Shown: positions 27,460 through 62,170 of the stretch, piece after piece
How positions within the stretch are numbered: position 1 is the first letter of the stretch
Layout of the letters: every line of letters begins with the position of its first letter
Origin: Macrostomum lignano
Taxonomy: Eukaryota
DNA: 64,000 nucleotides
Direction of reading: 5' to 3'
Assembly: GCA_002269645.1 (NCBI GenBank)
Contig: NIVC01003091.1
Coordinates: 55,860 to 119,859 of the forward strand
Made by a program: the position numbers and the translations under genes
Notes under the pieces: model-generated
What the model saw: only the letters and a program-made list of their open reading frames with translations
Told to the model about the DNA's origin: nothing
Databases searched by the model: none

Positions 27460-30405
27460 TTAATCACTCATTTTGAATTGCGACCCAGTTCTCGCATCCA
27501 CACTCAGGTGGGCATGAGCACGGTCCCATGTGCGCAGCGCAGCACTGTGCCTGTTCAGCAGGGATTCCACCGCGTTCAGCCTCATTTCCACCAGGTCAAT
27601 GGATGCATCGAACGCGACTGAAATGACGACAACATTACTCAGTAACAAGACTAACCAGTGCTAAACAGTCTCCCGGGTTAACTCACCGTCAGAATCCACA
27701 TACGACTCTCCTGCGCTCTATTCCAGAAGGTGTTTTTGAATCGCTGCAGGATGAATTGCACAATCTGGAAGTCGCGCGCTCCGGCGACCTCGCAGTTCTT
27801 GGACATCTCGTAGCTTTCATTCAGAACGCTGACGAAGAAGTTGACGATGACGAACGTAAGAAAGGAGACGTAGATCGAGAAGGCTATCTTCGGTAAAAGT
27901 CCGTGGTGAGTGACTATCTGTATGTCGAACTTGCCCAGCATCGCAGTGAACAAGGTGGACATTGTGCCAGCTGGTGAGTTGAACTGCTGCTGCACTGAGC
28001 CAAGCAGCAGATTCATGAGCAGGCTGAAGGCAACGAAGATCACACAGAAGACGATGCTGAAGGAGCGCATCTGGCTTAGAGAGAGGCGAAGCGTAGCAAG
28101 CAGGTGACTGAGGTTGGTGCTGAACCTGACGAGACCCAGCAGAGACAGCTGAAGCATGAAGGTGCCGGCGCCAAGGCAGTAGTAAAAGTACTGGTTCAGC
28201 AGCAATAGAGCCCGTAGCTGAGGTCTGCCGCCGTTCACAGCAGCTTCGAGAGCGGCCCCAGTGTTGGCAGTCCGGACTCCGTAGATGCTTGCGGTCGCAG
28301 TCATGCTCAGCGCAACGCCAACGTCCAGCCAGTTCTCGAAGCTGTTCCAGAAATCTCGAAACTTCCGCAACCGCAAAAGAAGCAGGACCAGCCGAATGAG
28401 GACGATGATGCCAGCCAGAATCTCTGAGACCAGAGCGAACACTCCCATGGCACCGACGTACCGATAGAGACGAGTGCTCAGCAGCTGATGGCTCACCAGA
28501 GCTCCACCAAACGGTTGCAGCTCAACAGCCAGGGTGACAGAAGTGAACAGGTTAATGTCGGAATACAGCAGGTCCAAGTCGATGGCCACAAAGCGAGTGT
28601 GTCGGTCCAACCAGTTCAGGCTCTTCAGCTCGCCGATCAGAGCTCGGCTCTGCTCGAGGCTGTCGGGCAGCAGGATCGAGAAGCCACCTCCGCGGTACTC
28701 AGCCAGCTGTCCCGAGTATCCGGCACCGTCAACACGGTTCATGAAGGCTTGGGCAAGAAGCTCGCCATTCGTGAGGTTGCACGGCGTCAGCTCCGTCCAG
28801 CCGGGAGCAAAGCAGCGCGTCTCGTCTTTGTCCCTGTCGCTGACGAGCCCGACGCTGACCGGCTTGCGACGCCGTCGCAGCTGCCGCACGGAGACGCGGC
28901 TCAGCCGATAGCCACAGCCGTCAGAGATGAGCTTGGATCCGGACTTCGGGAACACGGATTGCAGAAAGCTGTCGTTGAGTGCGCTGTACATTTGATCGAC
29001 AGTGTTCGACACAGACTCAATATCAGCATATTTCAAGTGGTTCAGAACGCTCTCGTGCAGCTGGAAAATCATCGGGTCCAGACTGGCGTAGCAGATGCAG
29101 TACTGCAGGAACAGCAGCAGAATGGCAAGACAGGCGTTCACGGAGCTGCTGATGGCCTCTTTTCTCAGGGGATCCTTCTTGGCCTCGGACTGCAGCTCGT
29201 GCAGGTAGGCAACGCCCTCTGTAGAAGTTTGAAGTCGCACAAGCCTTGCAAATGTTTCTGCGCCATGACTAATGTATGCAGAGCATCGCGAATAAATTTA
29301 ATGGATTAAAGGATCAATTACAACATGCATACCCTTTTGAACTACTTTATTGTAGTGAGAGACTCGAACCAACGGAGTATGCTCAACATCGTAGTCCTTT
29401 CGAAAGATGACGACAAGGATGAACCCAATAACAATCACCTGCAAGTACATTAAGTAGTTATTTAGTTCTACGGTGTCCAATAACAAATGACACCGATCTA
29501 ATTAATATCATACACGCTCATGCAAACTCAAACCTTCAGAGGCTGAACAAGCAGCGCTGTCTGGATGAACGACAGCACAAAGGCCAGCAGCCACTGCTGC
29601 GACTTCTCCTGCCCCCACTGCATCGCGTAGAACACCAGAAACACGCCAGCCCCAACCATGCTGCCGAGAACCAAAGCCCAGCCGATGTACTGGCACCAGT
29701 ACGGCAAGGTGAATCGCTTTGGCTGCGAACCGGAACTCTTCTTCACCAGCGGCGTGTTGGCGGGATTCTCTGTGTAGTTGTTCGCTCGTCCGCTCAAGTC
29801 CTCGGAGGTTCGTAACACTTGCATAGTCTAAAACATTTGAGTATAGCTGTTATATTTGTCTATATGAGTAGAACAACTGAACAACTCAAGCCAAGAGTCT
29901 GACCTCATCATTAAATTTCTCAGTAGTCAGTGTATCATCAGTATTTTCTTCGATTGTTGAAAGAATGACGTCCTCGGGCTCATCGTTATTTGGCTCCGGC
30001 TTTCGCTCCGACTTTAGAAAGAATATTGTAACCGCTGCAGAAACGGGAATGACTACGAGACCTCCCATGAAGGAGGTGAAGAGAGTGTTGATTGACAATT
30101 TTATGGGTCCGATGGAGATCGTGTCAGAAGCAGCCTGGCTCTCCTCACCTACGCCGTAGAACATGTCGTTGGCAATCATGGTCATGAACAGCAGGCAGAA
30201 GCACACCCCGAAGCGTTGCAGGCGGCTGAAGTTTGTGTCGGTATCGCGCTTGAAAACGGACATCCACAGGTGGTCGTCTTGAAACTTGCGCTGCAGATTA
30301 AGCTTCACAAATCGAGGCTGGAACGCCAGAAGCTCCTTGGTCGCCAGTTTCAGAACCACTGACGGATCGAAGCCGACAATCGGTTCCGAGTTGACAAACA
30401 CGTAC
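27460..30405 (-). CDS. Polycystin TM and channel region; exons 30405-29904, 29827-29534, 29438-29333, 29218-27704, 27617-27460
   Basis: DDHLWMSVFKR...FSRLQRFGVCFCLLFMTMIANDMFY, RVSVRQLR, pore-like TMSTLFTAMLGKFD, then C-terminal FDASIDLVEMRLNAVESLL...*. Confidence 0.9.

Positions 30406-62170: not shown

Follow-up and report, generated by a model that had tools for sequence, protein, structure and literature searches.

What does the minus strand between positions 27460 and 62170 of this Macrostomum lignano DNA encode: one giant receptor related to polycystin-1 (PKD1), with a mosaic of lectin-type modules at its N terminus, or several genes lying in tandem? The window analysed is a 64,000-nucleotide (nt) stretch of contig NIVC01003091.1 (assembly GCA_002269645.1, positions 55,860 to 119,859 of the forward strand), and all positions below are counted from its first letter. 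An initial annotation, made from the letters alone, had proposed a single receptor of 6,000–7,000 amino acids (aa) that links multi-glycan recognition to polycystin signalling. Our analysis suggests that the locus is probably a single gene of ~34.7 kb and ~68 exons, predicted to encode a PKD1-family subunit of ~6,240 aa. The N-terminal array contains three cassettes of modules, and we have very little doubt that at least cassettes 2 and 3 form one chain with the PKD1 core.

Genes were found with a purpose-written splice-aware Viterbi parser, which combined codon log-odds with weight matrices for donors and acceptors trained on the locus; for training, a (TAAC)n satellite was masked and filtered introns were used. 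The automatic model that resulted (6,509 aa) was set aside for its filler exons and for false introns within long open reading frames (ORFs). It also treated two tandem repeats as coding, (LIE)n and (THFSAAG)n, an error of the automatic model given that the curated model places these repeats in introns. Because of the filler exons, the lectin part (62.2–33.5 kb) was curated by hand, seeking the best-scoring GT-AG pair for each pair of neighbouring module exons.

The curated model comprises 68 exons and 6,238 codons with zero in-frame stops. All 67 of its introns are GT-AG, with a median length of 95 nt, most lengths between 45 and 150 nt, and the consensus AG/GTRAGY...TTNCAG. The best splice pair, picked ignoring phase, keeps the frame at 45 of the 49 module-exon junctions (binomial P ~1e-17 against the one-third expected), although this test is somewhat biased in that the weight matrices had been trained on an earlier in-frame model. 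A splice-aware coding path scores 1560 bits on the minus strand, compared with 300 bits on the plus strand and 390–456 bits for 50-nt block shuffles; the minus-strand coding signal across 27.7–62.2 kb far exceeds chance. This score and the curated 68-exon frame confirm the collinear minus-strand exons that had been proposed at 27460–62170, and the ends of the model fit that extent. Just before the 5′-most model exon (62047..62169), position 62170 carries a strong acceptor, TTCTTCAG, that may serve in trans-splicing; at the other end, a possible last exon has its stop at 27460–27462.

The C-terminal ~2,800 aa of the model (residues ~3,436–6,238) form a clear PKD1-family core. An Ig-like/PKD-repeat region (34615..37582) holds two to three Pfam PKD domains (52–65 bits) and is followed by a REJ domain (32230..34569; PF02010, 127–142 bits), all above their cut-offs. 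Next come a pre-transmembrane stalk at the position of a GAIN domain with the first transmembrane segment (TM1; together 30940..32145), then PLAT with TM2–TM5 (29333..30873), and then TM6 with the polycystin (TOP) domain and the six-TM channel domain (27681..29218). PLAT lies in the first cytoplasmic loop, after TM1, and scores slightly below its Pfam cut-off (20.4 bits, E 9e-4, cut-off 23). Polycystin_dom (80 bits) and PKD_channel (53 bits) are both above theirs, and Ion_trans is also matched. Nine hydrophobic segments stand out strongly in the hydropathy profile and two more weakly, consistent with 11 TM segments, of which the final six form the polycystin channel domain with its TOP domain. 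Among PDB sequences, the PLAT–TM1–5 region aligns to the polycystin-1 chain 6A70_B (88.8 bits), PKD2L1 and PKD2 chains align over the final 390 residues (121–125 bits, with PKD2L1 at 125) and the channel part aligns to PKD1L3 (7D7E_A, 64.9 bits). The 520-codon ORF at 27678–29240 (minus strand) is 99% identical to a 534-aa M. lignano PKD_channel domain-containing fragment in UniRef (P0001); the only other word-index match to this ORF is Branchiostoma PKD2L2, at 24% identity.

The order PKD, REJ, PLAT and TM/channel put forward in the initial annotation is thus present, but the GPS that it placed between REJ and PLAT went undetected. PF01825 gives no match at E values up to 5 on the pre-TM1 exon, and the stretch before TM1 contains no HL-T-like cleavage motif, reading ...RFVSNLFGSFG where the family has C-x-C-x-HL-T. 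The pore loop (~27930–27945) reads LGKFD, where PKD2L1 has LGDFD and PKD2 has LGD. A lysine in place of the acidic filter residue is what a non-conducting or modulatory subunit of the PKD1 type would be expected to have. Within the PKD1 family, the predicted protein belongs with the channel-bearing (PKD1L/REJ) subunits.

Beyond the consensus GTGAGT donor at the annotated stop, a possible extra 3′ exon (27463..27619, minus strand) keeps an open frame that encodes a coiled-coil-like tail, IDLVEMRLNAVESLLNRHSAALRTW... The phase of the intron before it does not match the strongest donor (GTGAGT, 27686), and the tail exon (27619–27463) has no clear similarity to the tails of paralogues.

Ahead of the core lies a mosaic of ~3,400 aa, all of it on the minus strand, for which growth by tandem duplication of a multi-module cassette would be the best explanation. 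Cassettes 1 and 2 share one order: kringle-like, X1, X2, F5/8C (discoidin), FTP-like, F5/8C, short discoidin-like and C-type lectin domain (CTLD), then a spacer. Cassette 1 opens with kringle-like module 1 (61552..61970), in two exons at 61970–61839 and 61632–61552. After a 1,443-nt intron it continues with X1 (U2, 59558..60108), a beta-rich orphan whose end carries a GRYV...L.I motif; X2 (U3, 58106..59278), also an orphan; an F5/8C module of three exons (U4, 56863..57738); and an FTP-like module of three exons (U5, 55963..56772). A 1,537-nt intron separates U5 from the F5/8C-like module U6/7a (53428..54425), the middle of which is poorly modelled. Next are the short discoidin-like module U7b (52726..53349) and the CTLD U8 (50101..52725), whose exons at 52725–52559 and 50312–50101 flank a 2,246-nt intron. 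The spacer exons that follow (U9, 49521..50021) have no family match and strong in-phase splice sites on both sides.

Kringle-like module 2 (49123..49425; exons 49425–49297 and 49197–49123) links cassette 1 to cassette 2, which consists of X1 (A, 47912..48575), X2 (B, 47130..47804), F5/8C (C, 46573..47129), an FTP/F-type-lectin-like module of three exons (D, 45800..46456), F5/8C (E, 44882..45695), a short discoidin-like module (F, 44224..44809) and a two-exon CTLD (G, 42785..43318). A linker exon that contains Cys (H, 42455..42709) leads to the partial cassette 3, made up of F5/8C (I, 41153..42313), modules J and K (41152–40720 and 40590–40187; together 40187..41152) and a two-exon CTLD (L, 39598..40111). 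The array closes with module M (38554..39517), Cys-rich in its N-terminal part and F5/8C-like thereafter, a fibrinogen-related domain (FReD) in a single exon (37886..38455) and an EB/EGF-like Cys-rich module (37670..37813), after which the PKD1 core begins.

In pairwise tests, seven consecutive modules at 60.1–50.1 kb are positional paralogues of the seven at 48.6–42.8 kb. The two orphan types give the highest scores (X1, A/U2, 34.5 bits; X2, B/U3, 48 bits; both 0/200 shuffles), followed by the F5/8C pair C/U4 (17 bits), the CTLD pair G/U8 (10.0 bits), the FTP-like pair D/U5 (8.8 bits, 1/200 shuffles), the short discoidin-like pair F/U7b (7.0 bits, 0/200) and the F5/8C pair E/U6/7a (6.6 bits, 0/200). 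The cassette 3 CTLD is in turn a paralogue of G (L, 13.4 bits). The two kringle-like modules (61.97–61.55 kb and 49.43–49.12 kb), each of which precedes a cassette, are 36% identical. The modules have diverged too far for a BLAST all-versus-all comparison of ORF pieces, which recovered no more than three intragenic pairs.

Within the CTLD region of cassette 1 we also observe a 127-nt direct duplicate (50272–50398 and 50665–50791, 95% identity) that copies the start of U8 exon 2 with its upstream flank, and CTLD-like peptide fragments in another frame at 50360–50457 and 50617–50832.

An exhaustive HMMER search, run as a representative search with the REJ exon as query, gave 242 homologous matches. 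Among them are two predicted proteins of the annelid Dimorphilus gyrociliatus, DgyrCDS14438 (CAD5126282.1, 6,071 aa) and DgyrCDS14777 (CAD5126713.1, 5,543 aa). Both (P0015, P0011) align to the window model from the FReD through the channel, and in both F5/8C, CTLD, PAN, FReD and FTP modules stand ahead of PKD, REJ, PLAT and channel. Their N-terminal 2,500–2,650 aa match F5_F8_type_C (169–259 bits), F5_F8_type_C_2, the FTP type (86–93 bits), and Lectin_C (73–76 bits), as well as Fibrinogen_C and PAN. Iterated local hidden Markov models (HMMs) resolve eight to nine discoidin modules and two to four CTLDs in each protein, and the CTLDs terminate three cassettes in one chain. As in the window, F5/8C and CTLD cassettes are repeated, the array closes with F5/8C, FReD and a Cys-rich module, and PKD, REJ, PLAT and channel come next; module M occupies the position of PAN plus F5/8C in the annelid proteins. 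Unlike the window, the Dimorphilus proteins have PAN domains and a clear FTP (PF22633) after the FReD, and their modules match Pfam far better, whereas X1, X2 and the kringle-like modules of the window are not detectable in them. A further M. lignano paralogue model (P0020) runs from FReD to PLAT in one protein. Since the layout is common to the flatworm and annelid predictions, the predicted proteins represent a conserved spiralian PKD1-like subfamily.

The best REJ match is a 'PKD domain-containing protein' (P0003/P0155, 47% identity, 863 aa) on a 4.9-kb contig of a metagenome-assembled genome assigned to a Kangiellaceae bacterium, which is probably animal DNA binned into a bacterial genome. 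Many other REJ matches of ~900–970 aa resemble similarly shortened models.

How many of the array modules can be assigned to a family? The modules are so diverged that Pfam gives little direct evidence. When the model was searched in 1,000-aa pieces at E < 0.01, only two F5/8C domains and Fibrinogen_C were matched in the array; with lenient thresholds on hand-cut modules, C and U4 also matched F5/8C, G and U8 matched Lectin_C, and EB was matched as well. We also built annelid-only HMMs from the Dimorphilus modules and took 300 shuffles of each window module as the null. On this combined evidence four F5/8C domains, three CTLDs and one FReD are well supported; a further three to seven discoidin-like modules, one to two FTP modules, the two kringle-like modules and the EB-like module have moderate or weak support; and X1, X2 and K are orphan modules.

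Module E exceeds the Pfam F5/8C cut-off (PF00754, 33.6–36.8 bits, cut-off 28.2), and I (22.7–26.7 bits), U4 (20.9) and C (16.1) fall in the range of 16–27 bits. The annelid discoidin HMM beats 300/300 shuffles for E (32.3 bits), I (20.0), U4 (18.5), C (12.4), M (8.9) and J (6.3). It is marginal, with 1–8 of 300 shuffles, for A, U6/7a (3.4 bits, 3/300), D, U7b (4.4 bits, 5/300) and F, and gives no support for B, K, U2, U3 and U5. A profile of nine in-window modules matches factor V/VIII C domains, neuropilin b1/b2, lactadherin, CASPR2 and DDR1/2, down to 1e-28, a discoidin signal that stems from C, E, I and U4; the five other short modules, as a profile of their own, have no PDB match, and aligned to the discoidin profile they give only a 32-column C-terminal hhalign match with a probability of 10%. 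The eight or more F5/8C-like domains counted in the initial annotation therefore include four that are well supported, and that count is best read as an upper bound. Module J, the one contiguous module that was folded, gave an unusable AlphaFold2 model when folded alone with no alignment (predicted local distance difference test score 37).

The three CTLDs that had been proposed all hold, with the annelid CTLD HMM scoring U8 at 27.7, G at 21.4 and L at 8.3 bits (each 0/300 shuffles). Pfam Lectin_C (PF00059, cut-off 22.6) gives 19.5 bits for U8 and 22.1 for G, with no match for L. The fibrinogen domain is also well supported: Fibrinogen_C (PF00147) scores 40.2 bits against a cut-off of 22 and covers profile positions 43–211 of 221, and the exon aligns to the FReDs of P0015, P0011 and P0020. 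The proposed EB module is matched weakly and below its cut-off (PF01683, 16.5 bits, E 0.009, cut-off 24.3).

The proposal of three to four fucolectin-like modules stands in part. Module D scores 13.7 bits with an annelid HMM built from two FTP domains (0/300 shuffles, null maximum 4.4), and U5 is tied to the FTP type only through its paralogy with D. The same HMM gives no support for A, U2 or U5, and A and U2 have no detectable family; U2 has no Pfam, PDB or annelid match, U3 has no family match, and none of A, D, U2 and U5 has a Pfam or PDB match to F-type lectin/FTP (PF22633). A joint profile of the four 'fucolectin-like' modules has no PDB match, no annelid match and no hhalign link to the discoidin group. 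What had been taken for a possible kringle start proves to be two paralogous six-Cys modules with kringle-like spacing save for a short C2–C3 loop. Of their eight best PDB profile matches, seven are kringles (uPA, plasminogen, HGF, ROR1), at weak E values of 0.03–0.16, and Pfam kringle and PAN have no match on the relevant array pieces.

Do array and core belong to one chain? Short, strong phase-1 junctions connect M to the FReD, the FReD to the EB module and the EB module to the PKD region, and the parts from FReD to core are likewise joined in one chain in P0020 and in both annelid proteins. At the transition from cassette 1 to cassette 2 every junction has strong, in-phase splice sites, with exons U8b, U9a, U9b, Kr1 and Kr2 linked at 15.2–15.7 bits each and the Kr2-to-A junction at 11.3 bits. 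Introns of 79–99 nt connect kringle-like module 2 (49.4 kb) with the end of cassette 1, yet its paralogy makes it the first unit of cassette 2. With the 6,238-codon model, its 67 of 67 GT-AG introns, the 45 of 49 in-frame junctions and annelid proteins of 5,543 and 6,071 aa, a single protein of 6,000–7,000 aa is plausible, as had been proposed. Several observations nevertheless weigh against it. Residues 331–4300 of the model (3,970 aa) matched 0 proteins in a collection of 5.8 billion sequences, and the sole annotated product of the locus is the 534-aa C-terminal fragment. The joining of all exons in one mRNA is inferred from the sequence, and the annelid homologues are gene predictions only. 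A simple signal-peptide scan of the N terminus of the model found no start codon with a signal peptide. The junctions Aa–Ab, U6a–U6b, Ma–Mb and Fb–Ga are weak. Finally, there is a 1-nt frame discrepancy relative to the UniRef fragment near 29218. At ~29210–29440, P0001 reads ...EHTPL/RAFAYLHELQ, whereas in the window a one-base difference within a T run would put this donor and acceptor out of frame, which points to an indel between assemblies or haplotypes; the model stays in frame near 29.2 kb through another donor, 29333.

A break in the chain could lie near 49 kb. The donor of the kringle exon (49122) can use an acceptor at 48893, which yields PYFGCRSRFK and a stop with AATAAA directly after it, a configuration that also counts against a single chain. 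The locus could then comprise two tandem genes, a secreted lectin-array protein (~62.2–48.86 kb) and a PKD1-like receptor of ~4,950 aa that begins at 49.0–48.6 kb and carries cassettes 2 and 3, or else one gene with alternative 3′ ends. An ATG ORF at ~49028 has a hydrophobic stretch, LTLFVFTLMLISLCL, that could be the signal peptide of such a receptor, the exon A acceptor at 48575 is weak, and the introns of cassette 1 are longer and bear repeats. We nevertheless consider this arrangement rather unlikely, given that donor 49122 also joins exon A in frame through 48575, 48617, 48662 or 48686, that a kringle-like module opens the duplicated cassette, as in the arrangement at 61.9–60.1 kb, and that the annelid proteins keep three CTLD-terminated cassettes in one chain; the candidate signal peptide, moreover, has a 19-residue uncharged n-region. 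Independently of the number of genes, we observe that the product of the alternative acceptor (48861–48893) could be the 3′ end of a lectin-only isoform.

The long introns of cassette 1, with their satellites and a partial exon duplicate, are a further point against the one-gene model, and they also bear on the idea that cassette 1 (60.1–49.1 kb) is a decaying, unexpressed duplicate made of pseudo-exons, with the working gene running from ~48.6 kb downward. That idea would account for the poorly resolved interior of U6/7a, the partial exon duplicate at 50.27/50.67 kb, the CTLD-like fragments in another frame at 50.36–50.46 kb and the satellites that occupy introns. It is improbable, however: the module exons of cassette 1 are all open, their intron positions and phases match those of cassette 2, 13 of the 16 cassette 1 junctions score at least 12.8 bits, and frames that stay intact between paralogues of only ~25–35% identity point to constraint over a long time. 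An assembly artefact, in which haplotypes or paralogues were mis-joined into tandem cassettes, might be suspected because assemblies of M. lignano are rich in repeats and because of the one 1-nt difference from another assembly's protein. We give this hardly any credence, as the cassettes are far too diverged for haplotypes (7–48 bits at the protein level, with no DNA-level repeat beyond 127 nt) and frame and splice phases are continuous through all joins. One gene, with the array and the PKD1 core in a single predicted chain, remains our preferred reading.

What might such an ectodomain bind? Sugar-binding CTLDs carry an EPN or QPD motif plus WND. By sequence reading these are absent from all three CTLDs of the array, which have EPS, QPS and LPS instead (L, GEPS...WTAVDC; U8, GQPS...KEMFAC; G, LPSN...WSTVPC). 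Fucose-binding F-type domains have a His/Arg motif that includes an NR-D-CC stretch, and module D lacks this stretch, reading ...IFIVDMVEKL where the annelid FTPs read NRKDCC. With the canonical CTLD motifs absent, glycan binding by the array is unproven, and the multi-glycan recognition envisaged in the initial annotation is not borne out by these motifs or by the two fucolectin-like modules that have no family. Discoidin and fibrinogen-related domains bind many classes of ligand. The predicted ectodomain contains 115 N-glycosylation sequons and 135 Cys residues, and the safer statement is that the polycystin subunit would carry a long, heavily glycosylated ligand-binding or adhesive ectodomain.

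In a possible mechanism, an ectodomain of ~5,290 aa, comprising the ~3,400-aa mosaic and then PKD repeats and REJ, would meet matrix, mucus, cell-surface or particle-bound molecules, which need not be sugars. We infer the partner subunit, ligand class and cell type: the protein may pair with a PKD2-like subunit in ciliated sensory cells or sperm, where ligand binding or mechanical load on the long ectodomain could tune channel or receptor output. Analogy offers two candidate settings. In planarians, pkd1L-1, pkd1L-2 and pkd1L-3 work together with pkd2-like genes in ciliated neurons that sense chemical and mechanical stimuli (PMC11448475), and CTLD-bearing REJ proteins of sea urchins function in sperm (PMC1934368). 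More speculatively, and we would hold this only as a doubtful proposal, the ectodomain could be a fast-evolving recognition device that expands by cassette duplication, as FREP or CTLD repertoires do, wired directly to a polycystin channel, so that spiralians would have a receptor-channel in which binding of environmental, microbial or mate-derived surface molecules is converted into an ionic signal, with a soluble lectin-only isoform possibly produced through the 3′ end at ~48.86 kb.

The ectodomains described for the PKD1 family in the literature found contain only LRR, WSC, CTLD, SUEL, EGF, LDL-A and PKD repeats (PMC1934368, PMC11448475), and the observation in the initial annotation that PKD1/REJ proteins usually have few lectin-type modules agrees with this record (PMC1934368). 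Vertebrate PKD1L2, PKD1L3 and PKD1 resemble the window protein in REJ, PLAT after TM1, 11 TM segments, a C-terminal polycystin channel and at least one CTLD (PMC1934368). They differ in having at most one or two lectin-type modules (CTLD, SUEL), with LRR, WSC and LDL-A added in PKD1, and in possessing the GPS cleavage motif that was not found in the window; arrays of discoidin, FReD and kringle modules are not reported for them in the literature found. Sea urchin SpREJ1–10 are likewise invertebrate PKD1-family proteins with CTLDs ahead of REJ, for which a role in recognizing an extracellular glycan coat has been proposed (PMC1934368), but they have one to two CTLDs and EGF, SUEL or WSC only, are much shorter and show no cassette duplication. 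A lectin-type ectodomain is not reported for the planarian pkd1L genes (PMC11448475).

Searching with the annelid N terminus brought up multi-discoidin proteins of cnidarians alone; additional PKD1-like arrays were absent from the matches. The proteins of Stylophora ('GRL101', P0171) and Porites (P0166) have long ectodomains that mix F5/8C, FTP (PF22633) and CTLD modules, but are without the REJ, PLAT and polycystin core and so are analogous in design only. Our literature search found no publication on this array design or on the Dimorphilus proteins. The PKD1 family and every supported module type are already known, and the design is not unique, as the two annelid predictions share it; a PKD1-like core joined to cassettes of discoidin, FTP, CTLD, kringle-like and FReD modules nevertheless looks undescribed.

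The introns of the locus contain several repeats. A (TAAC)n satellite of ~348 copies with very strong GC skew (54532..55915, minus strand) lies inside the 1,537-nt intron between U5 and U6. Three tandem repeats have periods that are multiples of three, at 60323..60819 (21 nt x24, minus strand, within the 1,443-nt intron that separates kringle-like module 1 from X1), 45387–45495 (9 nt x12, perfect, the second intron of module E) and 33094–33235 (30 nt x4.8). All three are open in at least one frame, yet are intronic in the curated model. Inverted copies of a repeated element (62500–63900 and 18100–21200) flank the locus, with many ORF fragments that cross-match on opposite strands. The neighbouring plus-strand features are a Staufen-like ORF with a double-stranded-RNA-binding domain (16627–17262; dsrm 32 bits, Staufen_C), a Tc1/Tc3-type transposase helix-turn-helix fragment (22948–23355), a SAP-domain ORF (24305–25312; 47 bits) and an ORF without a Pfam match that by eye resembles a fragment of a mobile-element protein (26373–26723).

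Current gene models cover 534 of the ~6,240 aa predicted here, leaving the locus badly under-annotated. It raises the questions of whether the modules bring ligands or load to a polycystin channel, in which cells they would do so, and how such arrays grow by cassette duplication. The ligands of large PKD1-family ectodomains are little known, and a subfamily shared by a flatworm and an annelid would provide a tractable case, M. lignano being transparent and amenable to RNA interference and transgenesis.

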